Below are positions 27,202 through 63,899 of a stretch of 64,000 nucleotides of DNA, in pieces. The DNA is from Oculina patagonica (Eukaryota). The stretch covers positions 12,896,001 through 12,960,000 of the forward strand of contig NC_135766.1 in assembly GCF_052425735.1 (NCBI RefSeq), written 5' to 3'. The notes beneath the pieces are model-generated. The model made no database searches and was not told the DNA's origin. It worked only from the letters and a program-made list of their open reading frames with translations. Each line of letters begins with the position of its first letter. The stretch's first letter is position 1. A program made the translations under genes and the position numbers.

Positions 27202-30200
27202 ATGGCAGCTGCTGCACCTTCACCCCTGGCCAGCTCTGTAGAGAAAACAAATGGAGCCAAGCTCAGCAGACTTCTTATTGATGGTGGAACAACGGTTCTG
27301 AGGAATGTTTTTGATAGTTATCATCCTCCTGCAAACCTGGCTGCTGATCTCAATGCAAACTATCTTTCTCTAAACAATCTCTTAAGGAGAAGAGCCTTGC
27401 GTACAGCTCAGTGGGACCAACTGTTCCCACCTGGTGGAGCTGCACCAGACTCCAACACATTCGATATAACTCTTTTATTCGTCCTTTTGACCAACATTTG
27501 TGGTCTTTACCCTCATCCATTAGGATGGCACAATTTCCCACTCCCAAGTGACACATCTCTTGAGGCAAACCTTTGTCGCATTAAGTTTTTCCGAAATGAG
27601 TTGTATGGTCATTTATCGACCACTGGTGTTGATACACCAACTTTCTCTTCTTTGTGGCAGGACGTTAGTGCCGTTCTTGTTGCTCTTGGTTTGAATCAGG
27701 CAGAAATTGATAGATTGAAGGCAGAACATGGTGGGGAGGAAGATTATCTTGACGCGTTACTTGACTGGGCTGATAGTGAAGAGGATATCAAATCACAGCT
27801 GAAGGATATACGTCAATGTCAGACTGAAACACAACAAAGGATTGCAGAGGTACGTCAGACTCAACTTCAAGAACTTAAAACACTTGAGGATAGCCAGTCA
27901 AAACTGCAAGAATTACATCAAATCCAGATCACGACACAACAAACTGTAGAGGAAGTACGTCAGACCCAGCTAGAAGTTCATAAAGCGCTTCAGGATAACA
28001 AGTCAAAACTGGATGAAGTACATCAAACCGATAGTAACATAGAAGGAACTGTTGAGAGAGTACATCAGACGCAACTAGAAGACCGTGAAACAATCCAGGA
28101 AAACAAGTCAAAGCTGGAAGAAGTACATCAGACCCAGACCAAAACACAAGAAACTGTCCAAGCTGTAGCAAAAACCCAAGAGGAACATTTTGAAGCTGTT
28201 GAAACAGGTCTCCAGGAAATAAAGCAAGCAGTTGGTAGCTTGAAAGGAAGAAAAGGCACTGAAAGCCAAGCAGATAAAGTTCTACGGAAACTTGCCAAGT
28301 CTGAGTTCAAAGGAGACATTGAGTATCACGTGGGACGATTTCAAGAAGGCACACGTGAGTGGGTGTTTAACAAAGTTCAAAACTGGTTAGATGACAGAAA
28401 CTCTCAAAACCGCGTGATGGTGATCAGCGCCAATGCCGGAATGGGAAAGTCAGTAATTTCTGCCGTCACATGCAAAATAATGCAAGAAGCTGGAAGACTG
28501 TCAGGAAGCCACTTTTGTCAGCATAATAACGCACGTTACCGAAATCCTCAGCTGATGCTTCAGTCCTTGGCCTATCGCTTGTGTCATGCCCTGCCAGAGT
28601 ACAAGGAAGTCCTTCTGGAACAGCTTTCAGGAAATCTGGGTGAAGATCTTAACAACATGGGTGTGGAGGAGCTGTTTGCTTTGCTGTTTAAAGAACCTCT
28701 AAACACTGTAGCTGATCCTGGAAGAAACCTGCTCATGGTGATAGATGGTCTTGACGAAAGTGAATACCAAGAACGGAATGAGCTGCTTGATGTAATTGCT
28801 AACCACTTTTGTAAGCTTCCATGTTGGATTCGATTTCTATGTACGACCCGACCAGAGAGAAACATCGCCGAGGCATTAAAACAGTTGAAGCCGTTTCAGC
28901 TGGAATCAAGCGATGAAAAGAATGTGGAAGACATCAAACGCTTCTTCCAGAAGAGGACGGAACATCTAATCCAAACAGAAAATAAAGGTGCCATTGTGGA
29001 AAAGCTTATAGAGAAGTCTGAAGGACTCATGCTGTACGCATACTTTCTTGTGTCATTTCTCGACGAGAATGTAGCAATTTTGGAAAAAGGAGATCTTGAT
29101 CGCAACTTACCATTGGCAATTTCGTCAGTCTACCATTCCTATTTCAAACGTCTAGAAAATGAACTAAGGAAGGAACTAGGCGTCAAGGAAGAGAATTTTC
29201 TGAATCTGTTAAGTGCTGTTACCGCATCAAGAGAGCCCTTGCCGATTGGCTTAGTTTCTAAAGTTTTGTTACCTTGTGCAAACTCACCAGTTACAAGGCG
29301 TAAAGTACTAAAAGCTATTAGTAGTGTGTCATCCCTTCTTCCCATTCGCGATGGCAGTGTACATGTCATTCACAAGTCAGTTAAAGACTGGTTGACAGAC
29401 ACATCATGTTATGGAGAGCATGTTTTTACCTTGGACGAGAAGGAAGGCCACCGCATTCTTGCAAACCTCTGTGCTGATGAACTTGATGACCTGAAACTCA
29501 AAGGTGAACGTGAACCAGTGCTTAGCTCTACTGAGAAGTATGCGCTACATCATGGTGCACCACACATGTTGCAGTTAGAGGAAGATATGAGACCAGGTGG
29601 ATGTAGCCTGGAGGAGTGTGTACAAAGATATGTGATGGACTTAGAGCTTGTGTATGCAAAGCTCTTTGTAAGCACCTCGTTACCAGCTGAAGACATCTTA
29701 TGGCTTCAAAGGCAGGAAATCTCTCAGGGGCTGTCTGAAGATAGTAAAGGTTTGTTGAACACCTTAATGTTCCTGTTACGAGAGTACCACAACACTTTTG
29801 CAAAACATCCTCATGTGTTTTTCGAAACCGTGCTGAATGAGGGAGGAACAGTGCTATCTTCTATGGCATCGAGCCTGTTGCAAAACAAATATCCAGAAAT
29901 ACCGTATATGGAATTTGTGCACAAGGAGATGCAGCGGGGTGCTGTTCTATCTCGATTTCAATGTTCGTCTAAAGTGGCTTGTTTTGATGTTTCACCGCAG
30001 ATGGACTACATGGTGTGTGAATGTGACGAGGGAATGATTCAGATGTGGTCACTCCATACCGGCAAGCTTGTATGGGAACGTCCAGTGTTGGAAAAGAAAC
30101 TTCACTACGGGAATGGAGCTTACAGAATATCACCTTCTGCTTCACATGCCTTATTATTTTACCGCTCAGTCGTTTTCCACCCCACTGATGAAGTGGTGTT

Positions 30201-31766
30201 ACCAGGAGTCCTTAGCCATGCCTATAGTTTTGATGGAGACTTGAAACCACTGTTTCCCCAAAGTAGCTGCAAATTCACAGTTTGCTCGGTTTCAGGAGAC
30301 AAGACCACAATGCTAACTGATTGCCCCAACAATGCAAAATGCATTGTTATGTGGAGTCTGAAGAATGGTTCCGAGATTACTCGTACCACAAGAAGTGAAG
30401 ATGTTTTATCTTTTGCTTGGTCACGAGATGGGAAGCTGCTGGCAATTTCTCATTCCACAGGTTCCATTTCTATCGTCGATGTGTTGGATGGTTTTAGAAC
30501 ACTGACAGAAAATAACATCCAAGAAAGTTGTGGAATGATAAAGTTCTCACCTGACTGTCGATCTCTTTGGTGCTTTGGTGGAGTACATTTGCTAAATCAT
30601 TTTTTTTGTTTGAATATCAATATGGCGGAACATCCGAATTGTGCATTAGATGTTAGTAATTCCTATGGTAAATCCTATGTGCCCTGGGAATTTGAATCAC
30701 GTAGTGAGGCTGGATTTTTGTTAGGAGATCCTATTTCATCTGTGAATGTGAAATCTTGTTTTGTGTTAAATGAGGAAACAGTATTGAGAGGTTCTCCTGG
30801 TGATACTTTCGTAGACATGTTGCATATTCATAAACTACGAAAAAGTGGAGGAAAACTTACATTTGATAGCATCAAAGAAATTGCATTGTCTTTGAGTGGT
30901 GAGACCGTTTATGCTTTTGGCGATGCCCTGAAACCAAACGTCAGGGCTTGGGATGTTTCAAGTGGAGAGCTCGTTGGGCAGCTTACTCTAAACACAACTT
31001 GCCTTGTTAAGAATTGCCTTGTAGCTGTGAAAGAAGGTGTTTTATTAACAACAGGAACTGGTACTCTTGAGATGTGGGACTTTATATTGTCTGAGTGTGT
31101 CCAAAAATGGACCATAGAATACGCAGTCAGAAAGATCATCCCCATATCAGATGAACGAGTGGCGTGTGAGGCAAAATGGGGAAATGAGAACAAAGTGATC
31201 ATATTGGATACAACAAGCGGAGAAATCATGTCGACAATCCCATCTGGTCACAGGATGCTGGTTGCATGTAACAGTAAGTGTCAGCTGTTAACCGGCAGAA
31301 GTTTCTCTTCACTTGTGTTGTCGGATGGCAAAACCACTCTATGGAAAACCAATCTAAGCGATGTAAATACATATGATTTAATTATAGTTCTATTTGGGGT
31401 GTTTTCTCTTGCAGAACAGTTTGTTGTAGTTTCCATAAGAGGCAAAATAACGCCCCCAACATTGCTTGTCCTCAGTGCAGTTTCCGGCGAAACACTACAC
31501 ATGTTATATAGAGGCGAGCAGTTTCGGGATTGTAAATTTGTTAGTGAAGAGGATTGTGTTATCAGCTCGGGAGAATATTGTCTTCGACTGTTTAACGTCA
31601 AATCTGGAGACCTGCTGAGTGTAATGTATCTGGAAAATAAGGTTACTTGTTTAGCAGCCTGTCCTCGTAAGCATGGCCTTGCCGTTGGCCAAAGTGACCG
31701 AAAACACGGATTCAAATTTATCCAGGTGCAGCTACCGCAAGATAAAGACAGCAGGAAGAACAAATG
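27202..31766 (+). CDS. NLR-like STAND protein, paralog 1, main coding exon (HEPN - coiled coil - NACHT - WD40)
   Basis: DZIP3/hRUL138-type HEPN (FDITLL...RNELYGH), 35-aa repeats, Walker A ANAGMGKS, Walker B VIDGLDE, TTRPE, HKSVKDWL and WD-like blades. An acceptor AG is at 27161-27162. The ORF's TGA lies within a GTGAGT donor at 31767. Confidence 0.93.
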
Positions 31767-32923
31767 GTGAGTCATTACGAAAATTTTCAAAAAAATCACA
31801 AGTCAATGTTTATAAGAGATGAACATCTTATTCTTAAAATGATATTCGGAATAGCGGTGTATTGCAATGGAGAAATGCGCATCAATGCTCGCTACAACAT
31901 TGAAAACAGACAGAATTAGTATGGTTTACTTCAAGCTTGTGTGAAAACCACAAGTTGCCATTTGAAGGCAATGATACAGCCTTTAGGTAGATACCAATAG
32001 AACCTATAAGAATCCTGTGGTGTTTTATTACTCCAATTGATCAAAGTAGAATATATACATATCTTGTTAGACATTTTTTCGACTTTTTTTGCTTGTTTAC
32101 AAGCAAAAAGAAGTAGAATAGCAGTTATGTGGGGTAAAATCTGGAACCGGAAGGAATCGCATTCTTGTTAACTCTCAAGGGACTGTTTTAATTTCTCAAG
32201 GGAATACTTTCCGCTGTGGGTGATCAAAGCGCGTGACTTGTAAAGTGTCACTCTATAGTTGTGCTTCAGCACTTCCGTTCTTGTAGAAAAAACGTGACTT
32301 GTCAAATTTACAAACGTTATATAACAATCAAAAACGTGAGTAGCCCAAATCTTACGTCACATAACCAATTAAGAATGTAAGGGGTTCAGCGCTCGAAGAC
32401 AGCGAAGTAAGAACGCAATTTGTACTGGTAAAAGTCTTTAGGCGCCAATATTAATTTAACCTAAAACGATTAACAACGCAAATTTGCACTGGTTCAAGTC
32501 CTTCACACACTGAAACGTTGCTAATAGTTAACCAAAGGGAACTCATTTCGTGACAATTGATTATTTCTGCTGAATTGCACAATTTAGAATTGCAACATCA
32601 TTAAATGTGTTAAGTGATATTTACAAGTGTTTTGTAGCCTGTTGTGAAATTACTTCCGGTGGAAGCAGTCAGTAAAGACCAGTAAACGCTAAACGTTTTT
32701 GCTTCTGTTCAGAAGTTAATGCATCGCCATTAGAAAAATAAACAGCAACTGTTTTACTAGAAATGTAGTCGTTAGAAATGGCATGTGTAGCCGTAAGGTA
32801 AAGAATAACGCGAGGAAGCGGCTTTTGGTAATATCCAACTGAAAATTTACTGTGTGGGGTTAAGATTGCGTGACGAGACAAAAGGTAACTCTGTCGTGCG
32901 TAACCTTTATCGGGAACCCTGCA

Positions 32924-34083: not shown

Positions 34084-34124
<41 letters not shown>

Positions 34125-34193
34125 TGGGGTTCGAACCCACGACCTCCCGCACAGCAGTCCTGCGCTCTACCAACTGAGCTAACCAGGCGGCGG
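32924..34193 (-). mobile_element. tRNA-derived SINE interrupted by a MITE
   Basis: Head with A box TAGCTCAGTTGG and B box GGTTCGAACCC (34193-34125). LINE-like tail GTAAAGCGC...GCGCTATATAAAT plus ATT-rich repeats at ~33000-32924. Confidence 0.8.
33008..33857. mobile_element. PIF/Harbinger-like non-autonomous element
   Basis: 15-bp TIR GGTTGAGGTCACACT/AGTGTGACCTCAACC, 3-bp TSD ATT and subterminal TTACTATAGTAA repeats. Confidence 0.75.
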
Positions 34194-37135: not shown

Positions 37136-37208
37136 GGTGACTAGCACACCAGAGATGGAAGACAGAAGAGAAAACAAGAGGTTAGACATTAGCAGTAACG
37201 TTTGTTAG
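37136..37208 (+). CDS. Duplicated predicted terminal exon B
   Basis: Same acceptor and phase, giving W-VTSTPEMEDRRENKRLDISSNVC-stop. Confidence 0.45.
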
Positions 37209-41813: not shown

Positions 41814-43049
41814 TCAAATAAAACTGAAATTAATGTTCAGTCCGCTCGGTCTGAGAGAACCGAGCTCGAAAATCAGTCGCATTTCCTGCTGTTTCCGGCG
41901 CGTGTTGCCGCCACTGCACTGTTTCAGGCCACAAACCGCTATGTCGTCGAGTGAGTGGGAGGCTGAGTTGAAATGTTCAGCCACCGGGAAGCCAGGAGAG
42001 TGGTTACGGATACTTCGCAAGTGCTCACTGAAACGTTCCCGGAGGCGCCTCCCAGTCTCACCGATGTATAGGACCGAACAACGGCGACAAACGATGCAAT
42101 AGACAACATTTTCAGACTGACAGGTGAAGCGATCACGGATGGTATAGACGCTCTTGGGGCCCTGTATGTTAGTTTGGGGTGTGGTGTACTTGCACGTCAG
42201 GCAACGAGGACGTCGGCAGGGATAAGTTCCGGCGACTGAGTGCGTGTATCCAGAGGAGTGCACGAGAGCATCCCTGAGGTTTTTGTCCCTTCGATACGAC
42301 ACTAGGGGGAACTCGGTGAAAATCCTGCGTGTCTCAGGATCAGTGGACAATATGTCGAACTTGTCCAGCAGGATGCGTTTTGTGCCGGTGTTGAAGGGGT
42401 TGTACGTTAATACGAGCGGCACTCTATTCTCTGCGTTGTCGTCCCGGTGTGATGGTGGTGTTAGTGCGTCGTCTCGGCGGACAGTTGATACCCTGCGTAG
42501 GTCGTTGTCGAGTGAGGCCTCGGGGTAACCACGCGCCAGGAAGAAGGTCTTCATTTCCGAGGTTCTGGCTACAAAATCATCATTATCAGAACAGATTCGG
42601 CGAAGTCGAAGAAACTGGCTGTATGGGATTGCCTTTTTACAATGATCCGGATGGAGTGACGTATGATGGAGGTAATTGTGTGTATCTGTCTCCTTGTAGT
42701 GCACGGACGTCTGTAGGGTGTTGTTTTTAATTGCCAGCTTGATGTCGAGAAAAGGTAGTTCCAGTTCACTGATGTTGGATGTGAACTGCAGGGCTGGGTG
42801 ATAGTTGGAGACGTAATTGATAAATTCCTCCAGATCAAGGCGACTGCACTGTGCAGCTCCGACTACATCGTCAATGTAGCGTTTGTGAAGTTGGGGTACA
42901 AAGCCGGTGTAGTTGGAGCGGATCTGTTCTTCAATGTAACCGACAAACAGGCACGCATAGTTGGGACCCATTTTGCTTCCCATTGCCACGCCTCCTATCT
43001 GGCGATAGTGTTGATCGTTAAATGAAAATGCATTGAGATTCAGTACCAT
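41814..43049 (-). CDS. Penelope-like RT (partial) and GIY-YIG endonuclease
   Basis: GVAMGS, RYIDD, LPFLD, S.HP, then VVYCIVCRRC...YIGETGRRLRERFSEH...GLN. The frame is open, but the RT N-terminus is missing. Confidence 0.92.
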   Translation of the reverse strand: MVLNLNAFSFNDQHYRQIGGVAMGSKMGPNYACLFVGYIEEQIRSNYTGFVPQLHKRYIDDVVGAAQCSRLDLEEFINYVSNYHPALQFTSNISELELPFLDIKLAIKNNTLQTSVHYKETDTHNYLHHTSLHPDHCKKAIPYSQFLRLRRICSDNDDFVARTSEMKTFFLARGYPEASLDNDLRRVSTVRRDDALTPPSHRDDNAENRVPLVLTYNPFNTGTKRILLDKFDILSTDPETRRIFTEFPLVSYRRDKNLRDALVHSSGYTHSVAGTYPCRRPRCLTCKYTTPQTNIQGPKSVYTIRDRFTCQSENVVYCIVCRRCSVLYIGETGRRLRERFSEHLRSIRNHSPGFPVAEHFNSASHSLDDIAVCGLKQCSGGNTRRKQQEMRLIFELGSLRPSGLNINFSFI

Positions 43050-44197
43050 ATTTAGTATATCAAGAAGTTTTCGGCCATTTTCCGACGATTCCCGATAATT
43101 TTGGAATATTTCCGAAGACTACTGAATTGATCTCTGGAGACTACCGAAGATTTCCGAAGATTGCCTATGATGTCCGAAGACTACCAAAGATTTCCGAGGA
43201 GAAATTTGAAAATTTTCAAAGCTCATGAGTGATTTTATTACCGATTTTCAAAGAGCAGATAAGAATTTACAATGCTAAAAGACTATGGCTTTTTTTACGA
43301 AAAACCCTCCAAACACTTAACAGTATTTTCTCCAGAAACAGTAAACATTAAAAAATTGGCCAATTTACACACACTAAAAAATATTGGCGAATAACACTAA
43401 ACATTAAACTCCATTCAGACCCTCCACAATGGCACCGGAGTTTGTGGGATTTAATGTGTTGTGTTCTTTCACGTTGTGTTCTGGTGTTGAGGCGAGAGAG
43501 GGGCATGAGGGGGATATGTGCGCACAAGCTGAGAATTCTAAAACAAAATCAAGTTTTTATGAGGCAAGGTTCGCTCACAAACAATGATTTGTTTTCTTTT
43601 CAACAGCAGGTCGACATTTCTTTAGCGTTTGACGACTCACATTGTACAAAAGGATTATCAGTGTCACTTTTTGGAAGTTCAAAAATAAGGCTTACATGAA
43701 ATTGAGGCTAACCTCACAAGCAAAAATTGATGCCTACTGTGTTGACCACGTCCGCTAAAGCTTTGATTGACAGTTTATATACTCTATTTTCTCAGATAGC
43801 TGAACCCGCAAAAAAAAGCAACGTAAGAGAAATAAAACTACCTGCTGGACTGTGAAACAGCCCCAATTTTAACGCCATGGGTTCTCTGTAAATAGCGCAA
43901 ATCCTTTAATCGTCTCAAGCTTTGTCTGCCACTGTAAATTATGATACTTATACTGAAAAGGAATTCTTTGTTTGATCTCAGAATACGTATTGTTTAATAA
44001 GCCCGGCACCGTAGAAAAAAATAAGAATTTGCTCAGTAGCTCGCCTATTGCCCAAATAATCACCGCTTGGTATCGCTGCGTAAATTAAGTCTTAAATCAA
44101 CAGCGTTGCATGGTTGATCAAAGAACGAAGGAAACTTGGCACAGTTCTCTGTCACGAAATGTTAGAGTAGTGAGGGAAGGACCGAATTAACCCCTTC

Positions 44198-44492
44198 TTT
44201 GTGGAATAAATTATTTTTTGTGGAATTAATTAAGTAGGTGACGTCATAGGGGCGTAAGTGACGTCATCAAAAATGGGGCGTAATCTAAAAATAGAAAAAA
44301 TTACCTTTTATTTGTGGAATTAATTATTTTTTGTGGAATTAATTAAGTGGGTGACGTCATAGGGGCGTAAGTGACGTCATCAAAAATGGGGCGTAATCTA
44401 AAAATAGAAAAAATTACATCATCGGGCATAATCTAAAAATAGAAAAATTACATCATCGGGGCGTAATCTAAAAATAGAATAGTGACGTCACA
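44198..44492. promoter_or_regulatory. Subterminal repeats with five CRE/ATF palindromes (TGACGTCA), mirrored at ~49600-49896
   Basis: Two 113-bp direct repeats each contain two TGACGTCA, and a fifth lies at ~44483. Function is inferred only. Confidence 0.55.
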
Positions 44493-45394
44493 ATACCCCA
44501 GGGGTAAACGTCATAAAAATGATGAGATCATAATTTAAAAATAGAATAGGGACAGTATTGCCTTCATCTTGTTTATTGTCGCAAAATAAAATAATATTTT
44601 GATATAGGTCAAAGAATCTGCATTCAGAAGTCTTTTTAAAGGCAAAATTATCGGTATATTTAAGCTTTGTGGAGCAGCCGACCGAAAAGTCATGGGAGCG
44701 ATTATTTCTCGTTTCCATTCTAACTCGGGCAATAGTTCGAATATAATGTATGCAGGTTGGCGCAATGTTTTGCTGTGAAAGACCATTGTCGCATTTTCAT
44801 ATTCCCGGCATATTCTGTTCATCTCTGGTAAGTTTTTGCTTCTAGTCCAAACTAGAATTAAATAACTTCGTGATCCTTAATCAACTAACGCCAAGATTTA
44901 TCGCACGCGAATTCGCATCAACTTGAACTAATTAGTTTACGAAATCAACATTTCACTGGCACTTTTTTGTTTAACGAAATTACGTTTGTGAAGATCCATG
45001 ATGTCATAATTGAACTTTCTACTCTATGGCGGGAGCGGTTTTCAGCATAACACAGAACAGGCATGAGTATTTATTTCGGTCAAAGTTTTTAGCTTTGTAA
45101 TTATGCAAGTTGTCTTGTCGCATACATTTAGTACTGCTAACATACCGGTAATTGTTTTTAAAACAATGGTAAAGACTCGATGTGCTCTAGTGAACAAAGC
45201 ATGACCAATCGAAAAGTTAAAACAATAGAGTGAACGCGCTTCAGTGACCTCGGATATAAACAAGGATTTCGAACCGCTTATGATAGAAAACATATCGGTA
45301 CAGAGTTTAAAAAAAATCATACACTAAACACACAGATTGTAAGTAAGATAAACTTTTATTTCGATCGTTCAACATGGCATTACAATGATTTAAT

Positions 45395-46603
45395 TTAATA
45401 ATCCTCTTCTTGTCCTTTGGAAGATTTGTAAGGCGAGTTTTTATGTATTCGCCGGGAGCGTCTTGAAGGCCTTTTCGGTTCATCATCCCAGTAATTTACG
45501 AATCGGATTTGAGGTCGTTTCCGCTTTTTAGGCGGAGATAATGATTCCACCGTGGGAGGAGGGGTCAAGTTGCCTGCGGAAGATATTTGTTTCTGCCCTT
45601 CGGTTGCTTCTGGTATAGAATTGAGCTGGTGTTTGTATGTCAAAAACCTGTTTTGCAGCTGTATGTATTGCCTTGCTTTTTCGTCTTCTGCAAGGTCTCC
45701 ACGAGAGAGAAAGCCATCCATATTGTTCTGCAAGCGTTGCGTTTCCGAAAGTACCGGGGGAATCATCAAGTTTTGCTGCTTAAGATATTGCACTAGTTCC
45801 TTAGAAACGTTGCCTTCTACTTGGCCTTTATCGAATCGTTCTTCACCAGGTAATACGTTCGTTCGCAATCTGCAACTGTCCTGAGTGGTTGGTTTAAGAT
45901 AAACAAACAGATAACCAAATGGTCTCTGTACCGCGTCTTCATACTGTTTCATAAACCAAGCAGTTTGTCCAGGATACATTTGTTTTGCTAGTGTCAAAAT
46001 CTGCAGTTTGTCGCGGGAGTTTTTGAAAAGTACCAAGTAATGGCTGTTTAAGCTGATGCTTCGATTGCCTTTGCCTTGATGGAAGAGGTTTTGCACAATG
46101 TAAATGACACTCAAGTTGCGATGATGCGATCCTTTAGTAAACAGGTTCACGACTCGGTTATCACTTCCGGCTTCGATCATTTGGTCGTCGATGACAATCA
46201 AGTTTCGTTTATTAACATCAAAGTAAGAATCTTGTTCTAAGGTCTCAGGGATACCCTTGCTAAATTCAATTCCAGGTATCGCCATCAACAACTCGCTGTA
46301 GGCCGGTTGCCACTGAGAATAGCACCAAACAATCCTCTCAGGGGGTAGGTGAATTGTCTTGTGAGCCTGTTGCAACAAAGATTTAACCCAGAGCGTCTTG
46401 CTCGAACCTGTCATTCCCGCCACCATAGACACCACCATACAGGTAAACGGATGCCCAAGTGAAACCGCTGACACTTTTCTCGAGAACTCCGACATAGTTT
46501 GAAATGGAGGAAAACCGGAAGTACTATGTTTACTGCTCATGTGTCTTTGCATGCTATCTTTCCTTGAAAAATTTTTTTGACAAATAGGACAGGACCAACT
46601 CAT
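45395..46603 (-). CDS. C2H2 zinc finger plus Polinton A32/FtsK-like packaging ATPase plus C-terminal extension (~402 aa, possibly inactive)
   Basis: MSWSCPICQKNFSRKDSMQRHMSSKH; HPFT...AGMTGSSKT (altered Walker A); LIVIDD; LFTKGSHHRN; IVQNLF; RPFGYL. The likely start is the ATG at 46603, not 47182. Confidence 0.85.
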   Translation of the reverse strand: MSWSCPICQKNFSRKDSMQRHMSSKHSTSGFPPFQTMSEFSRKVSAVSLGHPFTCMVVSMVAGMTGSSKTLWVKSLLQQAHKTIHLPPERIVWCYSQWQPAYSELLMAIPGIEFSKGIPETLEQDSYFDVNKRNLIVIDDQMIEAGSDNRVVNLFTKGSHHRNLSVIYIVQNLFHQGKGNRSISLNSHYLVLFKNSRDKLQILTLAKQMYPGQTAWFMKQYEDAVQRPFGYLFVYLKPTTQDSCRLRTNVLPGEERFDKGQVEGNVSKELVQYLKQQNLMIPPVLSETQRLQNNMDGFLSRGDLAEDEKARQYIQLQNRFLTYKHQLNSIPEATEGQKQISSAGNLTPPPTVESLSPPKKRKRPQIRFVNYWDDEPKRPSRRSRRIHKNSPYKSSKGQEEDY

Positions 46604-47622: not shown

Positions 47623-48453
47623 ATGAAGAGAAAGATAGACTGGGACGATGAAGAGGAGGAAAGCGGACAAGAAGATAGCACAACCTCTGATGACGAGAGC
47701 GATGACGAGGAACCCCGGATAAACGATGTTTTAAATAATCTTTCCCAAGCTGTGTCTAGAAAGTATGCTTCTGAACTGCTGCATAGCATGGCCACCTCCA
47801 AAGATATCTTGTTTTGGACACCACGCGGACAATTACTCCGAAATCAACGCATAATACCAGTAACAAACATTTCAGAACTGGTCGAGTATGTGCTACTTCC
47901 ACATAACGATGATGTAGCCAAACCCCGCGCACTCAATACCTTTTCAGAGGGACTGGCGGAGCTGGGAGTTAATAAGCGTTTGATAAAGAATAAGAAAGTT
48001 CTAAGCGATATATTACAAAAAGAACAAGCCTATCGTGATAAAGAGGAAGAGGAGGATGACAATAACTCAACTGGCAGTAGTGAAGAGGAGGGAACAGCTT
48101 CTGAGGAGGGTAGTGGAGATGAGGAATCTCAAGGGAGCGAGAGCGACAGCGATGAAGAAGCCGAGAATAGCGATTTCGAAAATGTAATTCAGACAAAAGC
48201 TAGTTCTCGATGTGAACACTGGGAGGGTTCCAATGTATATGATACTGCGATCATGAAATGCCCGAAGTGCTTTTGGGAAGATAACTGTAAAATTTGTCCT
48301 ATATGCGAGCACGAAATCCCTCTTGACCGAAAGCACGGAAAGGATACTTTGCGTCGATGTTACGATTGCGGAGCTATAACACACAAGAACGTGGAGACCT
48401 TGCAGAAGACGAAAAAGCAAGGCAATACATACAGCTGCAAAACAGGTTTTTGA
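47623..48453 (+). CDS. Polinton-associated protein with acidic tracts and a Cys-rich C-terminus, truncated or fused at 48390
   Basis: W-x3-G-QL...IPVTNISELV...P...F...L...GV...LIKN block, D/E-rich tracts and CxxC pairs. The last ~20 codons derive from the inverted arm. Confidence 0.6.
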   Translation: MKRKIDWDDEEEESGQEDSTTSDDESDDEEPRINDVLNNLSQAVSRKYASELLHSMATSKDILFWTPRGQLLRNQRIIPVTNISELVEYVLLPHNDDVAKPRALNTFSEGLAELGVNKRLIKNKKVLSDILQKEQAYRDKEEEEDDNNSTGSSEEEGTASEEGSGDEESQGSESDSDEEAENSDFENVIQTKASSRCEHWEGSNVYDTAIMKCPKCFWEDNCKICPICEHEIPLDRKHGKDTLRRCYDCGAITHKNVETLQKTKKQGNTYSCKTGF

Positions 48454-51264
48454 CATACAAACACCAGCTCAATTCTATACCAGAAGCAACCGAAGGGCAG
48501 AAACAAATATCTTCCGCAGGCAACTTGACCCCTCCTCCCACGGTGGAATCATTATCTCCGCCTAAAAAGCGGAAACGACCTCAAATCCGATTCGTAAATT
48601 ACTGGGATGATGAACCGAAAAGGCCTTCAAGACGCTCCCGGCGAATACATAAAAACTCGCCTTACAAATCTTCCAAAGGACAAGAAGAGGATTATTAAAT
48701 TAAATCATTGTAATGCCATGTTGAACGATCGAAATAAAAGTTTATCTTACTTACAATCTGTGTGTTTAGTGTATGACTTTTTTTAAACTCTGTACCGATA
48801 TGTTTTCTATCATAAGCGGTTCGAAATCCTTGTTTATATCCGAGGTCACTGAAGCGCGTTCACTCTATTGTTTTAACTTTTCGATTGGTCATGCTTTGTT
48901 CACTAGAGCACATCGAGTCTTTACCATTGTTTTATAAACAATTACCGGTATGTTAGCAGTACTAAATGTATGCGACAAGACAACTTGCATAATTACAAAG
49001 CTAAAAACTTTGACCGAAATAAATACTCATGCCTGTTCTGTGTTATGCTGAAAACCGCTCCCGCCATAGAGTAGAAAGTTCAATTATGACATCATGGATC
49101 TTCACAAACGTAATTTCGTTAAACAAAAAAGTGCCAGTGAAATGTTGATTTCGTAAACTAATTAGTTCAAGTTGATGCGAATTCGCGTGCGATAAATCTT
49201 GGCGTTAGTTGATTAAGGATCACGAAGTTATTTAATTCTAGTTTGGACTAGAAGCAAAAACTTACCAGAGATGAACAGAATATGCCGGGAATATGAAAAT
49301 GCGACAATGGTCTTTCACAGCAAAACATTGCGCCAACCTGCATACATTATATTCGAACTATTGCCCGAGTTAGAATGGAAACGAGAAATAATCGCTCCCA
49401 TGACTTTTCGGTCGGCTGCTCCACAAAGCTTAAATATACCGATAATTTTGCCTTTAAAAAGACTTCTGAATGCAGATTCTTTGACCTATATCAAAATATT
49501 ATTTTATTTTGCGACAATAAACACTGATGAAGGCAATACTGTCCCTATTCTATTTTTAAATTATGATCTCATCATTTTTATGACGTTTACCCCTGGGGTA
49601 TTGTGACGTCACTATTCTATTTTTAGATTACGCCCCGATGATGTAATTTTTCTATTTTTAGATTATGCCCGATGATGTAATTTTTTCTATTTTTAGATTA
49701 CGCCCCATTTTTGATGACGTCACTTACGCCCCTATGACGTCACCCACTTAATTAATTCCACAAAAAATAATTAATTCCACAAATAAAAGGTAATTTTTTC
49801 TATTTTTAGATTACGCCCCATTTTTGATGACGTCACTTACGCCCCTATGACGTCACCTACTTAATTAATTCCACAAAAAATAATTTATTCCACAAAGAAG
49901 GGGTTAATTCGGTCCTTCCCTCACTACTTGTTAGAAATTACTTGCTGCCGAAATATTCATAAAATCTCCAGGAAGTGAACGCGAAAGCAAACTTGAAGGT
50001 GTTTATTTTAAAAACTCCGCCAAGGGAGTCTATCCTCATAATTGCTTTCCCCCACCCCTGAAAACCATCCCTCACGTACCGGTTGGCCAGGCCTACAACT
50101 CTGCACAAAACTAGCTACCCCCTGGACTAGGCTCAATTTCCAGGGGGGACACCCCTATGATTTTTACGGGGTGCTCATTATACCTTTTAGGGGTACAATT
50201 TGTGGATTGGTACCGCTTAGTTAGGGTGCTTAATCCTAAAATAACCGCCGCTAGAGTTGTTGGTGGTAGATGAACCAGGAACGGTCATTGTTTTCGTAAC
50301 GCAAATAACTTTGATTTCTGAATTTTTCACTTGTAAACAGTCATTCAGTCATCAAATTGCCAGTGCCAGTTTATTTGTTGTCTAGAATTAGAACCTCTTA
50401 GGGGCTCCTCTAGGAAAAGCGGAAAACCGCTTACCAAAGCTGGTTTAAACCAAAGTAGTCAACGCTCGTCAACGCTGTAAATATTTACTTGTCTTTCTCC
50501 AGACATCTAACTATAACTGACTCTGTTCAATCCGTTTTAAGAGGTGACAATATATCACGGAACCGTGTTGGTTTATATCGAGCCGCACTATATGTACATT
50601 ACTCCACAGTTCCCAAGTCCCAACTCAGTGCCATTCCAGCTAATTGTATGCGCTGAGGCCTCTGGGACTGATTTTTGGCACTCGATTGCTCAGATTGCAA
50701 ATTTGAGGTGTGACTGTAGCTGTGTTGAGTTATTTTCGTTTGGATTCACTGAACATTGATGAAATCCAGTTATTTTGCAGCAAGGTTAGTTCAGAAGCAA
50801 CAAGTCGTGTTCTTTCTTATAGCAGCCCGACATTTCTTCAGTGTTTGTCGACTCGCTGATCTGCTAACTGCAGTAAAATCACTTCCGCTTTCGAATTCAT
50901 CAGTTGTGCATTTCATATTTTGAACGAAACTTTTGTCATTTCTGAGCATTGTTGTCATCTATACAGGTCCCAAGCCGTGGAAAACAAATTCAAGATGTGA
51001 TTTTTCTCCGATTAATTCTCTGAGGTAAGCAATTGCTGTGGAAAACCTTCGAATGAAGCTTGAGTTAAACTTTTTCCGAACCACACGCCCCCCACTTACT
51101 CCCCGAATAGTCCGTTTCTTTTGTCCAATTGATTTATCAATCAAGGGAATGCATTCCCTTAATAGTCAAAAAATATTCTGTCATTTGTTTTACTCGTTTT
51201 TACCTCTCCTTGAGGGGTTCCGTCAATTGTGCTTGGCTTAGGGTTTGGGAATCATAGTTCCCCT

Positions 51265-56206: not shown

Positions 56207-56451
56207 AATAGCCCTTATGCATGTTTACGTTATATATATATATAGACTGGCTAGCTAGTTTCACCACCACGCCTCACTTTCGAAGTGCCAAATTGTGAAT
56301 TTTATCATAAACGAATTCCCAAAGCAGCAAAGATGAAAAGAATACCCACGTGAAAACTGCATGAAAGCAGCAGAGATTTGACAATAATTCGCGTAAACGA
56401 GGCTTGGTGGTGAATTTTGAGCATATGACGTTATCATGCATAAGGCCTATT
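56207..56451. mobile_element. Small MITE inserted into one copy of an old duplication (~54940-55220 and ~56140-56600)
   Basis: TIR AATAGCCCTTATGCATG/CATGCATAAGGCCTATT. The other copy has the empty site. Confidence 0.65.
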
Positions 56452-58879
56452 GTTCACACTGGCCCTTTGCTAAGATTTATGTTCACTTAATCCTAATAGA
56501 ACTCATCAAATATAATTTGTCTCTCTTGTTTATACTTTGTATTACACCTTTCTTACTTCCCAGGAGTATTTTGCTTTGATTTCTATGCAGTGATTTCTTG
56601 TTGAGTTAAACTTGATATTTTTTTCCTTCATATGTAACATTTATTCCTGTACAGACTGTAGTTAGTTCCCAGTCCTGTTTGGATCTACTGATAGGTTAAT
56701 TGCAACAGATCCCATCCACTTGCCTGATGGCATTATGCAATGACGTCATTACTTTAAATAAGTTAGAGCAGTCTAAGTGTTTTATATTAGTGACACCCTA
56801 AAAGTTGTTAATTTTTATTTCAAAACCTACAGTTTTTTGTTCATGCATTTTTAAGCCAGATGTCAAGTATAATTTTCCCATTTAGGTTCAAAAAAATGAC
56901 ACTTAGGTCCTACTTGAAATCAAAGAATCTGTTTAAATGCTAATAAGGAGCTCGAAGTTGAACAGGATTAAATAAGTTGATCAGTGTTTTGAACAAAATG
57001 TCTGCATCTCTTCTGATTGTCAATTGTTATCACTTACAGGTGCAGGTCCCAAGCTGTGGAATGCAATGTCAGGATGTGATTTTTCATACATATTTTCTTC
57101 TAATTTCAGGTAAGATCTGACTTATGGATCGAGGTTAATAAAATTAATTATTTGATGATATGCTCAATCAAAAATTATGGATCAATTTAACTCTCCAGGC
57201 TCAGCATGAGTTAACTCATGTGTCAATCGAATTTTTTTTAGTGTTTGATTAGTTAAGAAAATTCCGCTAAACACATGGGCAATAAAGGCATTAAAATAAA
57301 GTTACCAAAGAGAACTCATAGCAGTTGGTGATAGTTTAAATAACAGTTAGGAAAATGTTAGCCAAACTTGAGCTCTTGAGCTAACCCTGCAAGAGAAAAA
57401 TAAAATTGAAATTGTCCATATTTTTGTCAAAATGAACGTTTTATGTTCAAAACAAAATAGCAAACGTTTTAACCAATTTTAGGAGGTTTAACATTAACTC
57501 TTTCAAGAATCCGGCTTTAGAATTAAATCACCGGATGTAAGACTTAGAGAAATGAATTACAATGAGCTGTTTCAAATGGTGTAAAAAATGTTATAAGAAT
57601 ATTTTTGGTAATTAATTTTTTGTTGAGGCATCAAATTTATTATAATCTGTTTTTCATACTGCTGTTATCATCATATGCAGCTCTCAAGTTGTTGAACCTG
57701 GGAATCAGGATGTGAGTTATCATTGCGTAAAATTCTTTAAATAACAGGTAGGCAATTTTGTTTATGTTACAATTTATTATAAAGCAGGCCTATCTTTCTT
57801 CCAAGATACATTAATTTTAACAAGACAGACTGGGGCAAGCCTGGTTCATAAGGTTCATAAGTCACTAGCTATGATTTTTTTTAACCAGCCAGCTTGCTGC
57901 AAGGGAAGTTCAAAATTCCTCGCAGGTTTTTTTGTTATGTGAGAAACTTAGGTACCTTGTGCTCTCAGCCAATCTCAAGTTTCGATGCTTTTATTTTTCA
58001 CAAAATCCCATTTAAATGTTTTTTTTTGTTGAAATTTGACGCATTTTTGATGGTGTCCTTTAAATGCACAATTTAATTTAAGGAAATTCCCCATTGCGCA
58101 TCCCTACTACGCATAATTTCACGTGGAATTAGTGCGCGCGTATTAAAAAATGGCAGCTTTAACTTTACGGCTAGACCACTTCAGACAGGTAAATCGTCAT
58201 TTTCTCAAAAACGAGTATGGCGACCTACATGTATCATTTTTTCTGTTGTTTTGAATTGAGTAGCAACTTTCTTTCTGTAGAATAAATATGGACCAATTCT
58301 CAGTGTTGAATAAGAAATAATCGTCGAACACGTGAATTTAGCAAGCAATCGTGACTACCGGTACATGTATAATCATGGTAATTTTATAAAGATTTATTAG
58401 GTATAAACAAGGTGCTGTTGCTCCTAAATGAGCATTGGCACGCCCCACTGTTATTTCAAAATTTAAGTTCCTATAACATAAACAGTCAATAGGCAAAGTC
58501 TCACAAAAATCTCTCTACAGGTTCTATTTCAGTGGAAAACCTTGAGACAATTGTTAGCCTATTGGAAATCTCGAAATAAAGACAGAATCTTAATACATGC
58601 CAAGCTGTTTTGGCAGTATGTATTATTTACTCATGGGATATTTGTTTTTGATAGGCTTTTCACAGCATTTTAGTATCTAATAATAGGGTTTTGTGAGCAA
58701 AAAACAATTTGCAATAAAATTAATGCAGCTGTGTAAAGTCACGTCACCAGTCTCACCCTGGTGTAGGATATTAACCATATGGGAATTGCATAGTAATGAT
58801 CCTGTATAATATGCCAAGGCAAAGAGTATACACTTAGGATATGCTTTACCGAGAAAGAGGATATAGCTTGCAATATGGT

Positions 58880-59085
58880 ATACATACTACCTTCGGGTAT
58901 GGTATTCTTACCTAGGAGAAAGTCATACCCTGGGTTATTGAGTACTTTGGGCTATGATTTACCTAGGAGAGTAGCATCACCCTGGGGTATGGTATACTTT
59001 GGCATACGAACAACCTAGTAATGGGGAAACCCTGGGGTATGGTAAACTTTGGGTATGATGTATGATGTATCTAGGAGAATGTTAT
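58880..59085. repeat. Degenerate ~50-bp tandem repeat (ACCTAGGAGA...CCCTGGGGTATGGTATACTTTGGG)
   Basis: Three to four imperfect units upstream of the paralog 2 main exon. Confidence 0.7.
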
Positions 59086-59319
59086 CCCCTTGTACGACTT
59101 CCGGAAACAAACAACAACAACAACAACAACAACAAAACAAGCCGTTTAATCAAGGTACTCTGCATGAGCATAGAGTGAAATGCTATTTACACCTAGCAAT
59201 TGATTTAATAGTGTGCCGATTACGTTAAGCTATGATACAAAAACAATAACGAAATCAATTTTACTGCACACAGGAACTGTTAAAGAGCTTCATGTAAACC
59301 TCTGTATGGTGTACTTTGA

Positions 59320-62300
59320 ATGAAGATGGCAGCTGCTGCACCTTCACCCCTGGCCAGCTCTGTAGAGAAAACAAATGGAGCCAAACTCAGCAGACTTCTT
59401 ATTGATGGTGGAACAACGGTTCTGAGGAATGCTTTCGATAGTTATCATCCTCCTGCAAACCTGGCTGCTGATCTCAATGCAAACTATGCAACTCTTGACA
59501 ATCTCTTAAGGAGAAGAGTCTTGCGTGCAGCTCAGTGGGACCAACTGTTCCCACCTGGTGGAGCTGCACCAGACTCCAATACATTCGATATAACTCTTTT
59601 ATTCGTCCTTTTGACCAACATTTGTGGACTTTATCCTCCTCCCTTAGGATGGCACAATTTCCCACTCCCAAGTGACACATCTCTTGAGGCAAACCTTTGT
59701 CGCATTAAGTTTTTCCGCAATGAGTTGTATGGTCATATATCGACCACTGGTGTTGATACACCAACTTTTACTTCTCTGTGGCAGGAAATTAGTGCTGTTC
59801 TTGTTGCTCTTGGTTTGAATCAGGCGGAAATTGATAGATTGAAGGCAGAGCATTGTGGAGAGGAAGATTATCTTGACGCGTTACTTGACTGGGCTGATAG
59901 TGAAGAGGATATCAAATCACAGTTGAAGGGCATACGTCAGGGTCAGACCGAAACACAACAAAGTATTGCAGAGGTACGTCAAACTCAACTTCAAGAACTT
60001 AAAACCCTTGAGGAAAGCCAGTCAAAACTGCAAGAATTACATCAAATCCAGACGACGACACAACAAACTGTCGAGGAAGTACGTCAGACCCAGCTAGAAG
60101 TCCATAAAGCGCTTCAGGATACCAAGTCAAAACTGGATGAAGTACATCAAACCGACAGTAACATGGAAGGAACTGTTGAGAGAGTACATCAGACGCAACT
60201 AGAAGACCGTGAAACACTCCAGGATAACAAGTCAAAGCTGGAAGAAGTACATCAGACCCTGACCAAAACACAAGAAACTGTCGAAGCTGTAGCAAAAACC
60301 CAAGATGAACGTTTTGAAGCTGTTGAAGCAGGTCTCCAGGAAATAAAGCAAACATTTGGTATGTTCAGAAAAAAGGACACTAAAAGCCGAGCTGATGAAG
60401 TCTTAAGCAACCTTGCCAAGTCGGAGTTCAAAGGAGACATTGAGTATCACGTGGGACGATTTCAAGAAGGCACACGTGAGTGGGTGTTTAACAAAGTTCA
60501 AAACTGGTTAGATGACAGAAACTCTCCAAACCGCGTGATGGTGATCAGCGCCAACGCCGGAATGGGAAAATCAGTTATTTCTGCCGTCACATGCAAAATA
60601 ATGCAAGAAGATGGAAGACTGTCAGGAAGCCATTTTTGTCAGCATAATAACGCACATTACCGAAATCCTCAGCTCATGCTTCAGTCCTTGGCCTGTCACT
60701 TGTGCCATGCTTTGCCAGAGTACAAACAAGCTCTTGTGAATCGGCTCTCAAGAAATCTGGGTAAAGATCTCAACAACATGGGTGTGGAGGAGTTGTTTGC
60801 ACTGCTGTTTAAAGAACCTCTAAGCACTGTAGCTGACCCTGGAAGAAACATGCTAACGGTGATAGATGGCCTGGATGAATGTGAATACCAAGAACGGAAT
60901 GAACTGCTAGATGTGATTTGCAACCACTTTTACAAGCTTCCATGTTGGATTCGATTTCTATGTACGACCCGTCCAGAGAGGAACATAGCAGAGGCATTAA
61001 AACATTTGAAGCCGTTTCAGCTGGAATCAAATGATGAAAAGAATGCGGTAGACATCAAACGGTTCTTTCAGAAGAGGACGGAACATCTAATCCAAACAGA
61101 AAATAAAGGCGCTATTGTGGAAAAGCTTGTAGAGAAGTCTGAAGGACTCATGCTTTACGCGTACTTTCTTGTGTCATTTCTTGACGAGAATGTAGCAACT
61201 TTGGAACAAGGAGATCTTGGTGGCAGCTTACCATTGGCAATTTCTTCAGTCTACCATTCCTATTTCAAACGACTAGAGAATGAACTAAGGAAGGAACTAG
61301 GCGTCAAGGAAGATGATTTTCTGAATTTGTTAAGTGCTGTTACCGCATCAAGAGAGCCCTTGCCCATTGGCTTTGTTTCTAAAGTTTTGTTACCTTGTGC
61401 TAACTCACCAGTTACAAGGCGTAAAGTACTTAAAGCTATTGGCAGCGTGTCATCGCTTCTCCCCATTCGCGATGGTTGTGTACATGTTATTCACAAGTCA
61501 GTTAAAGACTGGTTGACAGACACATCATGTTACGGAGAGCATGTTTTTACCGTGGACGAGAAGGAAGGCCATCGCATTCTTGCAAGCCTCTGTGCTGATG
61601 AACTTGATGAACTGAAACTCAAAGGTGTACGTGACCCAGTGCTTAGCTCCACTGAGAAGTATGCGCTACATCATGGTGCACCACACATGTTGCAGTTAGA
61701 GGAGAATATGAGACCAGGTGGATGTAGCCTGGAGCAGTGTGTACAAAGATATGTGATTGACTTAGAGCTTGTGTATGCAAAGCTCTTTGTAAGCACCTCG
61801 TTACCAGCTGAAGACATCTTATGGCTTCAACGGCAGGAAATCTCTCGGGCGCTGTCTGAAGATTGTGAAGGTTTGTTGAACACCTTAATTTACCTGTTAC
61901 GAAAGTACCACAACACTTTCGCAAATCATCCTCATGTGTTTTTCGAAACCGTGCTGAATATGGGAGGAACAGTACTATCTTCTATGGCATCGAGCCTGTT
62001 GCAAAACAAATATCCAGAAATACCATATATGGAATTTGTGCACAAGCAGATGCAGCAGGGAGCTGTTCAAGCTCGATTTCAATGTTCGTCTAAAGTGGCT
62101 TGTTTTGATGTTTCTCCGCAGTTAGACTACATGGTGTGTGAATGTGACGAGGGAATGATTCAGCTGTGGTCACTCCATACTGGCAAGCTAATATGGGAGC
62201 GTCCGGTGTTGGAAAAGAAACTTCACTTCGGGAATGGAGCTTACAGAATATCACCTTCAGCTTCACATGTCTTGTCATTTTACCGCTCAGTCGTTTTCCA

Positions 62301-63899
62301 CCCCACTGATGAAGTGGTCTTACCAGGATTCCTTAGCCATGCCTATAATTTTGACGGAGACCTGAAACCACTGTTTCCCCAAAGTAGCTGCAAATTCACA
62401 GTTTGCTCAATTTCAGGAGACAAGACCACGATGCTAACTGATTGCCCTGACGATGCAAAATGCATTAGTATGTGGAGTCTAAAGAATGGTTCAGAGATTA
62501 CTCGTACCACAAGAGATGAATATGTTTTATCTTTTGCTTGGTCACGAGATGGGAGGCTGCTGGCAATTTCTCATTCCACGGGTACCATTTCTATTGTTGA
62601 TGTGATGGATGGTTTTAGAACACTGACAGAAAAGAACATCCAAGAAAGTTGTGGAATGATAAAGTTCTCACCTGGCTGTCGATCTCTTTGGTGTTTTGGT
62701 GGAGTACATTTGCTAAATCACTGTTTTTGTTTGAATATCAATATGGCGGAACATCCGAATTGTGCGTTAGATGTCAGGAAATCTTATGGCAAATCCTTTG
62801 TGTCCTGGGAATTTGAGTCACGTAGTGAGGTTGGATTTTTGTTAGGAGATCCTATTTCAACTTTGAATGTGAAATTCGATTTTGTGTTAAATAAGGAAAC
62901 TGTATTGAGGGGTTCTCCTGGTGATACTTTCATAGACATGTTGCATATTAATGAACTACTGGAAACTGACGGAGAAGCTACATTCAGCAGGATTAAAGAA
63001 ATTGTATTTTCTTTGAGTGGCGAGACCGTTTATGTTGTCGGCGATGCCAAAGAACCAAAAGTCAGAGCTTGGGATGTTTCAAGTGGAGAGCTCGTTGGGC
63101 AGCTTACTCTAAACGCAACTCATCTCGTAACTGAGAATTGCCTTGTAGCTGTGAAAGAAGGTGTTTTATTAATAACAGGAACTGGTACTCTTGAGATGTG
63201 GAACTTTGAATTGTCTAAGTGTGTCCGTAATTGGACCGATGTATACAAAGTCAGAAAGATCATCCCCATATCAGAAGAACGAGTGGCGTGTTTGGCAAAA
63301 TGGGGAAATGAGAACAAAGTAATCATACTGGATACAACAAATGGAAAAATTATGTCGACAATCCCACGGGATGCTGGTCACTGGATGCTGGTTGCATGTA
63401 ACAGTAAGTGTCAGGTGTTAACCTACAAACGACGTCCCACCGTCTTTGAGCTGTTGGATGGCAGAACCACGGTCTGGAAAACCAATCTTCGTTCCCTCGA
63501 TTATCTTCGATTTGGTATGTTTTCTCCTGCTGAACGGTTTGTTGTAGTTTGCGTAATAGGCAAAGGAAAGCCATGCACAGTGTATGTCCTCGATGCCGTT
63601 TCCGGAGAAAAACTACACACATTATGGAGAAGCGAGGAGTTCTGGCTTCGTCCGGATTGCAAATTCGTCAGTGACGAGGAATGTGTTATCAGCTTAGCTG
63701 CAGTAGGTTATTGTCTTCATCTGTTTAACGTCAAGTCTGGTGACCTGCTGAGTGTAATCGATCTGGAAAATGAAGTGAATTGTTTAGCAGCCTGTCCTCG
63801 TAAGCGTCTTCTCGCCATTGATCAAAGGCTCCCTCAACTCGGATTCAAACTTATCCAGGTGTCGTTACCGCAAGATAAAGACAGCAAGAAGAACAAAAG
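59320..63899 (+). CDS. NLR-like STAND protein, paralog 2, main coding exon (HEPN - coiled coil - NACHT - WD40)
   Basis: Collinear with paralog 1, with RNELYGH, ANAGMGKS and VIDGLDE intact. Acceptor CAG at 59271-59273. GTGAGT donor at 63900, so the last exon is probably outside the window. Confidence 0.93.

Follow-up and report, generated by a model that had tools for sequence, protein, structure and literature searches.

Do reef-building animals carry receptors in which a ligand-controlled switch is joined directly to a ribonuclease (RNase)? The question is raised by a 64,000-nucleotide stretch of the Oculina patagonica genome (contig NC_135766.1 of assembly GCF_052425735.1, positions 12,896,001 to 12,960,000; hereafter, the window), in which two tandem genes each encode a predicted N-terminal HEPN domain, a NACHT-type nucleotide-binding domain and C-terminal WD40 repeats. 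A first-pass annotation of the letters of this DNA had described the two products as intracellular receptors that switch on RNA cleavage without a death-fold adaptor. Our analysis makes it somewhat probable that they are two functional anthozoan HEPN-NLRs, i.e., Apaf-1-like STAND switches with HEPN RNase output and an immune role. We infer the RNase activity, the activation by oligomerisation and the immune role by analogy with RNase L, Ire1, bacterial CARF-HEPN and STAND systems, and human SAMD9. The pair represents ordinary, selected members of a catalogued family and no new kind of system.

The gene pair

Both paralogs are uninterrupted open reading frames (ORFs), the coordinates of which are given in Table 1. 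The first-pass annotation had reported two intact paralogs of about 1520 residues, and the ORFs encode 1522 and 1527 residues; its range of 27202-63899 started correctly and ended 4 nucleotides short of the stop codon of paralog 2 (63903). The proteins are 85% identical, and the DNA of 27189-31884 and 59313-64000 is identical at 89.7% of positions. The HEPN_DZIP3, NPHP3_N and WD40 profiles suggested as a check were all found in both paralogs, which share the Pfam domain order HEPN_DZIP3, NPHP3_N, HTH_TANC1 and WD40 propeller families. No Death, CARD, DED or Pyrin family was found in the Pfam scan of either paralog. The scan found no LRR family either, and WD40 propellers were the only C-terminal repeats. 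By domain composition the paralogs are NLR-like (NACHT-WD40) proteins, in keeping with descriptions in the coral literature, and not NLRs sensu stricto, which need a C-terminal LRR sensor.

The best database matches to both proteins were from the scleractinian coral Oculina patagonica. Both genes are already publicly annotated in GenBank and RefSeq, paralog 1 as a truncated model. This model (P0003; GenBank ACROYT_G030965, "hypothetical protein") is 100% identical to residues 1-1064 of paralog 1, departs from its ORF at residue 1064 (window position 30391) and stops two residues further on. It thereby lacks 458 WD40 codons that have conserved counterparts in paralog 2, and the break is probably a mis-predicted intron. 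Paralog 2 corresponds to RefSeq LOC144640946, whose isoform X1 (P0001) consists of paralog 2 and a 25-residue tail. Positions 1-6991 of a 25-kb unplaced contig (L001) of assembly GCA_052425735.1 are 100% identical to window positions 57010-64000, and the contig extends further, so that a small contig of that assembly carries the same locus.

Table 1. Features of the two HEPN-NACHT-WD40 genes (window positions unless stated otherwise)
Feature	Position	Strand	Remarks
Paralog 1, complete coding sequence	27202-31770	+	uninterrupted ORF, 1522 residues plus stop
Paralog 1, HEPN_DZIP3 domain, residues 13-190	27238-27771	+	limits from conservation and AlphaFold2 model
Paralog 1, HEPN_DZIP3 match, residues 43-176	27328-27729	+	Pfam
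Paralog 1, RNELYGH (R131-N132-x4-H137), predicted HEPN active-site motif	27592-27612	+	
Paralog 1, coiled-coil linker, residues 191-370	27772-28311	+	about four 35-residue repeats, 105-nucleotide period
Paralog 1, NACHT-type P-loop NTPase (NPHP3_N), residues 383-550	28348-28851	+	Pfam
Paralog 1, Walker A ANAGMGKS, residues 410-417	28429-28452	+	
Paralog 1, Walker B VIDGLDE, residues 513-519	28738-28758	+	
Paralog 1, sensor-1 TTRPE	28843-28857	+	
Paralog 1, winged-helix domain (HTH_TANC1), residues 666-757	29197-29472	+	Pfam
Paralog 1, IHKSVKDWL (H724) of the winged helix	29368-29394	+	
Paralog 1, tandem WD40 beta-propellers, residues ~915-1508	29944-31725	+	~13 blades in AlphaFold2 model
Paralog 1, predicted 3' splice site (polypyrimidine tract plus AG)	27145-27162	+	39 nucleotides upstream of ATG; sequence inference
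Paralog 1, TGA stop within consensus 5' splice site TG/GTGAGT	31767-31772	+	
Paralog 2, complete coding sequence	59320-63903	+	uninterrupted ORF, 1527 residues plus stop
Paralog 2, HEPN_DZIP3 match, residues 45-179	59452-59856	+	Pfam
Paralog 2, RNELYGH (R133..H139)	59716-59736	+	
Paralog 2, coiled-coil linker	59896-60432 (approx.)	+	
Paralog 2, NACHT-type NTPase (NPHP3_N), residues 384-551	60469-60972	+	Pfam
Paralog 2, tandem WD40 propellers	62065-63858	+	Pfam, paralog alignment
Paralog 2, predicted 3' splice site	59259-59273	+	46 nucleotides upstream of ATG; sequence inference
Paralog 2, TGA stop within AG/GTGAGT donor	63900-63905	+	
Paralog 2, added exons of isoform X1	L001 7950-8003 and 9800-9820		outside the window

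The HEPN domain and its predicted active site

The N-terminal domains matched the family HEPN_DZIP3 (PF18738) with E-values of 8e-43 for paralog 1 and 4.5e-46 for paralog 2 (146-157 bits at a cut-off of 27), and the same family was recognized in 101 of the 101 members of the N-terminal alignment (A1). The first-pass annotation had placed RNELYGH at the end of this domain; R131 and H137 of paralog 1 are located as it stated, but the domain continues to about residue 190. The spacing of the motif is Rx5H. The pattern R.{4,6}H alone does not exceed chance, being present in 49% of shuffles of residues 1-200, and it occurs three times in the first 200 residues of paralog 1. It is the family-wide conservation of RNELYGH, and not the bare pattern, that exceeds chance. 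Among coral homologues, R131 was kept in 111 of 113, N132 in 113 of 113, and H137 in 112 of 113. A diverse set, composed of the best 50%-cluster representatives (n=146) from a library of 1.84 billion proteins, retained R131 and N132 in 137/146 each and H137 in 134/146. Other near-invariant residues of the domain are R126, K128, D27, D88, and D117.

The AlphaFold2 model of the first 200 residues, based on a 101-sequence alignment, was all-helical, with a predicted local distance difference test (pLDDT) score of 90.5 and a predicted template modelling score of 0.81. RNELYGH was found at the C-terminal end of helix 120-136 and extended into the loop before helix 145-161, which is consistent with the location of the HEPN motif at the end of helix-3 (Anantharaman 2013, PMC3710099). 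In a few family members, weak cross-matches to the Pfam families HEPN_AbiU2, HEPN_MAE_28990 and DUF3644 were detected, the last of which is linked to the EC042_2821 HEPN family in Table 1 of PMC3710099. The HEPN assignment is therefore well supported at the level of family and motif, while the fold level is unconfirmed, because no comparison tied the model to a solved HEPN protein. The HEPN fold proposed by the first-pass annotation thus finds support in Pfam membership, the motif and the helix topology, and not in a match to solved HEPN proteins.

The degree of motif conservation also bears on the possibility that this HEPN domain is not a nuclease and acts as an RNA-binding or RNA-sensing module, or as a homotypic adaptor-like module recruiting HEPN_DZIP3 proteins, with signalling as the output. 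In an MBE survey of 2021, HEPN-NLRs were regarded as possible cytoplasmic RNA sensors, the label given to the domain by Noel et al. 2023 (PMC10236652) is "RNA-binding", and catalytically inactive HEPN families, such as Swt1, exist (PMC3710099). Besides, the model had no structural match to an active HEPN RNase, and as many as 61 of the 149 HEPN_DZIP3 representatives are shorter than 350 residues. However, loss of the catalytic residues is usual in pseudo-enzymes, and here no other feature of the domain is as well conserved as R-N-x4-H, among close relatives and distant ones alike. The short HEPN proteins that were inspected terminate within the coiled-coil linker and resemble gene models that were cut short; for this reason short HEPN-only proteins were rejected as candidate adaptor partners. 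A non-catalytic HEPN domain thus appears unlikely. One database protein of 780 residues (P0121) contains three tandem HEPN_DZIP3 stretches (E-value 1e-234) and represents either a true multi-HEPN protein or gene models that were merged.

The HEPN and NACHT domains are connected by a proline-free coiled-coil linker of about 180 residues, rich in Q, E, T and K. Its length varied from 50 to 317 residues among 113 family members. The sole database similarity of the linker was to the coiled coils of SMC and JetC proteins in the PADLOC and NCBIfam scans; among hidden Markov models of defence systems, PADLOC gave only weak JetC coiled-coil matches at residues 185-359.

The NACHT switch and the WD40 propellers

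The NTPase domain matched NPHP3_N (PF24883) with E-values of 6.6e-28 in paralog 1 and 1.8e-28 in paralog 2, while the classic NACHT model PF05729 scored 20.6 bits, below its cut-off of 26.7. The Walker A and Walker B motifs are intact, as the first-pass annotation had found. The Walker A lysine K416 and the Walker B residues D515, D518 and E519 were present in 113 of 113 homologues, as was H724 of the winged helix, and the sensor-1 arginine R550 in 112 of 113. The set of motifs of the NTPase switch, as judged from sequence, is complete in both copies. WD40 propeller families of Pfam span approximately residues 920-1400.

The AlphaFold2 model of residues 371-1522 had an overall pLDDT of 68.8, with reasonable helical and propeller parts. 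The top Foldseek matches of this model in the Protein Data Bank (PDB) were full-length Apaf-1 (E-value 1.3e-20), the human apoptosome and Drosophila Dark, with E-values from 1e-20 to 1e-16 and about 1050-1370 aligned columns. The TM-scores to Apaf-1-type structures were low (0.17-0.35), and the resemblance to Apaf-1 is therefore one of architecture rather than of superposable conformation.

Selection on the two copies

The paralogs differ by a synonymous divergence (dS) of 0.187, with an overall ratio of nonsynonymous to synonymous divergence (dN/dS) of 0.40. This ratio was 0.17 in NACHT, 0.25 in HEPN and about 0.33 in the helical domains and the first propeller. The last ~320 residues are the most divergent part (67% identity between paralogs, dN/dS 0.67). 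Column entropy across the family followed the same order, with 0.67 bits for NACHT, 0.82 bits for HEPN and 1.82 bits for the last propeller. These values indicate that both copies are under purifying selection and that the C-terminal propeller evolves faster. Such a profile would be expected if an enzyme and a switch that are both conserved are coupled to a sensor that diversifies.

The regional pattern of dN/dS and entropy argues against the view that one or both copies are untranscribed or functionless, i.e., young pseudogenes still free of stop codons. In favour of this view, exact-protein look-ups retrieved no transcript contigs for either ORF (P0001 and P0009 were located on genomic rather than transcript contigs), and the GenBank model of paralog 1 is truncated. 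Yet at a dS of 0.19 both 4.6-kb ORFs lack any stop or frameshift, dN/dS is only 0.17-0.25 in the enzymatic domains, all catalytic motifs are intact in both copies, and RefSeq gives spliced isoforms to paralog 2. Untranscribed or functionless copies are very improbable.

Gene structure and gene conversion

The coding region is intron-free in both genes and in the three relatives with DNA examined. A 3' splice site is predicted shortly upstream of each ATG, implying an intron in the 5' untranslated region (5'-UTR). The leader with the paralog 1 acceptor is also conserved upstream of the P0005 gene, and that with the paralog 2 acceptor upstream of the P0009 gene; P0005 and P0009 are more distant family members from another assembly. 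At the 3' end, the TGA stop of both paralogs lies within a 5' splice site. The GTGAGT donor of paralog 2 is used by RefSeq isoform X1, in which two small exons beyond the window add 25 residues.

Similarity between the paralogs begins and ends abruptly, 13 nucleotides before the ATG and 284 nucleotides after the stop (27189-32054). The upstream regions of paralogs 1 and 2 are unrelated to each other, while that of paralog 1 is similar to the upstream region of the P0005 gene and that of paralog 2, over about 1.7 kb, to the upstream region of the P0009 gene (78-87% identity). On the contrary, the coding sequences of the two paralogs share 91% identity, as against 81-82% with the P0005 and P0009 relatives, and in the family tree the paralogs are sisters with a support of 1.0. 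Since upstream regions and coding sequences give opposite relationships, the simplest reading is gene conversion or replacement between neighbouring family members, limited to the coding exon. The uneven synonymous divergence along the gene (chi-square p = 0.008) also points to gene conversion; the longest identical run between the paralogs is 103 nucleotides (permutation P = 0.02). A retroposed (processed) origin was rejected: the predicted 5'-UTR acceptor and the 3' donor are kept in both copies, and signatures such as poly(A) or a target-site duplication were missing. A search for further family fragments in the window, including the 27.5-kb spacer between the paralogs, found none.

Proposed mechanism

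In the proposed receptor, the tandem WD40 propellers would be the ligand-sensing and autoinhibitory part, NACHT and the winged helix would provide oligomerisation controlled by ADP/ATP, and the DZIP3-type HEPN domain on a coiled-coil stalk of variable length would be the output part. Binding of a cytosolic ligand to the propellers could release autoinhibition, whereupon nucleotide exchange would enable oligomerisation of NACHT. HEPN RNases need a dimeric arrangement, and oligomerisation would pair the HEPN domains to form a dimeric composite R-N-x4-H active site. The presumed outcome is metal-independent cleavage of cellular or foreign RNA, followed by translational arrest or cell death, with no death-fold adaptor between the receptor and RNA cleavage. 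The STAND receptor with RNase output and without adaptor suggested by the first-pass annotation agrees with the complete switch motifs, R-N-x4-H, the lack of death-fold families, the purifying selection with a faster-evolving last propeller and the Apaf-1-like architecture. It is thereby plausible and partly supported; the idea is not new.

A more extended version of this scheme can be put forward only tentatively. The coiled-coil stalks of a NACHT wheel assembled by the ligand may pair the HEPN domains into active RNases, so that coral cells halt translation or die without a death-fold, caspase or NF-kB relay. In animals, such receptors would correspond to the STAND and CARF-HEPN systems of abortive infection in bacteria. 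The number of stalk repeats and conversion limited to the coding sequence might tune and diversify the repertoire of such receptors.

Several points weigh against an RNase-coupled immune switch. Foldseek comparison of the N-terminal model with the PDB gave no match to a solved HEPN domain (best E-value 2.1), and comparison with BFVD gave nothing significant (best E-value 2.5). No meaningful HEPN match was obtained in phmmer and profile hmmsearch scans of PDB sequences, and a comparison of the family profile with E. coli RnlA by hhalign returned a probability of 0.1. These failed fold comparisons should not be read as negative results, since the helical bundles of HEPN families have diverged extremely from one another. 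The nucleotide-binding domain was poorly modelled (pLDDT below 50, model residues 61-201), and the NACHT fold therefore rests on sequence motifs. The HEPN domains might already be constitutive dimers owing to the coiled coil, and proximity-induced activation would then not be correct in its details. The case for an immune role is made from family expansion and the divergence pattern alone. Finally, literature searches found no experiment of any kind on a HEPN-NLR or a DZIP3-type HEPN domain, and accordingly no ligand, RNase assay or structure for this family.

The same molecular switch could also respond to an endogenous cue instead of pathogens, acting as a sensor-activated RNase or cell-death switch in stress, Apaf-1-like apoptosis, symbiont regulation, allorecognition, or transposon and RNA quality control. 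The nearest solved architecture, that of Apaf-1/Dark, senses an endogenous signal, the gene pair is surrounded by active-looking transposable elements, and antitransposon, apoptotic and unfolded-protein roles are among the options considered for HEPN proteins by Anantharaman 2013 (PMC3710099) and Noel 2023 (PMC10236652). However, paralogues numbering in the hundreds to thousands, their tandem arrays, gene conversion and a fast-diverging sensor end are typical of receptors for variable non-self ligands and not of a response to one conserved endogenous cue. We consider the endogenous role quite improbable, somewhat more so than a non-catalytic HEPN domain, and favour the immune one.

The scale of the family is illustrated by more than 1600 full-length matches and 1832 HEPN representatives, and published surveys report that it has expanded in gene clusters of immune type. 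If HEPN-NLRs do cleave RNA upon activation, animals would possess an immune pathway that couples a receptor directly to a nuclease; corals, bivalves and amphioxus would share it widely, and vertebrates would have lost it. Such a pathway would matter for coral disease and symbiosis, and for how STAND immunity in bacteria and in animals is related by evolution. In practical terms, two complete intron-free ORFs that differ mainly in the last propeller are convenient for cloning and sensor swaps.

Genomic surroundings

The window is eukaryotic DNA with a GC content of 33-48%, rich in transposons, and the 27.5-kb spacer is occupied by repeats and transposon-like ORFs. An apparently young long terminal repeat (LTR) retrotransposon is located upstream of paralog 1 at 20967-25396 on the minus strand. 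Its 147-nucleotide LTRs are 100% identical and have TG..CA ends, and the element is flanked by a 5-bp target-site duplication, CTTAC. Its ORF (21166-25188, 1340 residues) encodes a zinc knuckle, aspartic protease, reverse transcriptase, RNase H, and integrase. A degenerate retroelement at 15645-18463 (minus strand) has protease, reverse transcriptase and RNase H matches on separate ORF pieces, so its pol region is split over several frames.

Within the spacer, two 1.5-kb inverted repeats (44166-45703 and 48390-49928) are 99.7% identical and enclose a 595-residue ORF (minus strand) that encodes a C2H2 zinc finger, as well as a 280-residue ORF without a Pfam match; a large DNA transposon is one possible interpretation, a palindromic duplication another. 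A 411-residue ORF at 41814-43049 (minus strand) with a weak match to GIY-YIG nucleases (E-value 2.8e-4) possibly originates from a mobile element. Other repeats include two copies of a 659-nucleotide tandem repeat at 698-2016 (99% identical) and a complex array at 3804-8507 of direct and inverted repeats of 589-658 nucleotides with 99.8-100% identity. A 158-residue ORF at 13083-13556 (minus strand) matching DEAD/DEAH helicases (E-value 2.3e-15) probably represents one exon of a helicase gene that belongs to the host or to a transposon.

Comparison with known systems

The architecture and the idea of an NLR with a built-in RNase have already been published on the basis of in silico analyses (2013; 2021-2026). 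Table 1 of Anantharaman 2013 (PMC3710099) describes the DZIP3/hRUL138 HEPN family, with a "mostly conserved" motif and fusions to NACHT among others, and the same paper reports lineage-specific expansions of DZIP3-type HEPN in Nematostella and oyster. According to Emery et al. 2021 (PMC8260672), the DZIP3-like HEPN domain is the commonest non-LRR partner of NACHT in anthozoans, with 17-83 genes per species. Noel et al. 2023 (PMC10236652) described coral NACHT proteins, many with N-terminal DZIP3-like HEPN and WD40, that arose by tandem duplication. These two studies bear out the earlier remark that the domain combination is known in cnidarians. Takeuchi et al. 2022 (PMC9646362) presented Rx4-6H logos for about 200 oyster proteins and proposed RNA degradation, while TIAMMAt 2021 (PMC8662601) and an amphioxus genome paper of 2026 (PMC13012124) name HEPN-NLRs and call their function untested. 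Our pair and the invertebrate HEPN-NLRs agree in Pfam domains and domain order, in the Rx4-6H motif in which Asn follows Arg, and in lineage-specific expansion and tandem clustering; WD40 is a known C-terminal repeat of coral NACHT proteins. Nothing essential differs between the pair and the published HEPN-NLRs; the variable stalk of 35-residue repeats, the stop within the splice donor and the gene conversion confined to the coding sequence were not found in these papers.

Apaf-1, Dark and CED-4 have in common with the paralogs the succession of a NOD module, helical domains and two WD40 propellers, and ligand-triggered oligomerisation would be expected by this likeness. The paralogs differ in having a predicted RNase on a coiled coil in place of CARD, for which Pfam gave no match, and in an NTPase of the NACHT/NPHP3_N type, whereas that of Apaf-1 is NB-ARC. 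The propellers of Apaf-1 comprise 15 blades, compared with ~13 in the AlphaFold2 model of paralog 1.

Bacterial Avs and bNACHT proteins have the same effector-NTPase-sensor layout and are activated by target-induced oligomerisation, and HEPN is among the predicted enzymatic effectors of bacterial NACHT proteins. They have no sequence relationship to the paralogs, for which PADLOC and NCBIfam matches were confined to the coiled coil. Their sensors consist of TPR or other repeats, and they have been tested experimentally against phages.

RNase L and Ire1 are animal HEPN RNases that become active when a ligand causes their sensor module to dimerise or oligomerise. Their sensor is composed of ankyrin repeats and a pseudokinase or of a lumenal domain, not of STAND and WD40, and their HEPN family is different, with no sequence or structure match in our PDB searches. 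The KEN family, to which they belong, is listed as HEPN in PMC3710099. Human SAMD9/SAMD9L (PMC10246899) are large cytoplasmic antiviral proteins in which a STAND-like NTPase region is combined with an N-terminal effector, an RNase that depletes tRNA-Phe. The effector of SAMD9/SAMD9L is another tRNase module, not HEPN, WD40 repeats are missing, and homology to the paralogs is not detectable, but these proteins show that the combination of STAND with a built-in RNase operates in animal immunity.

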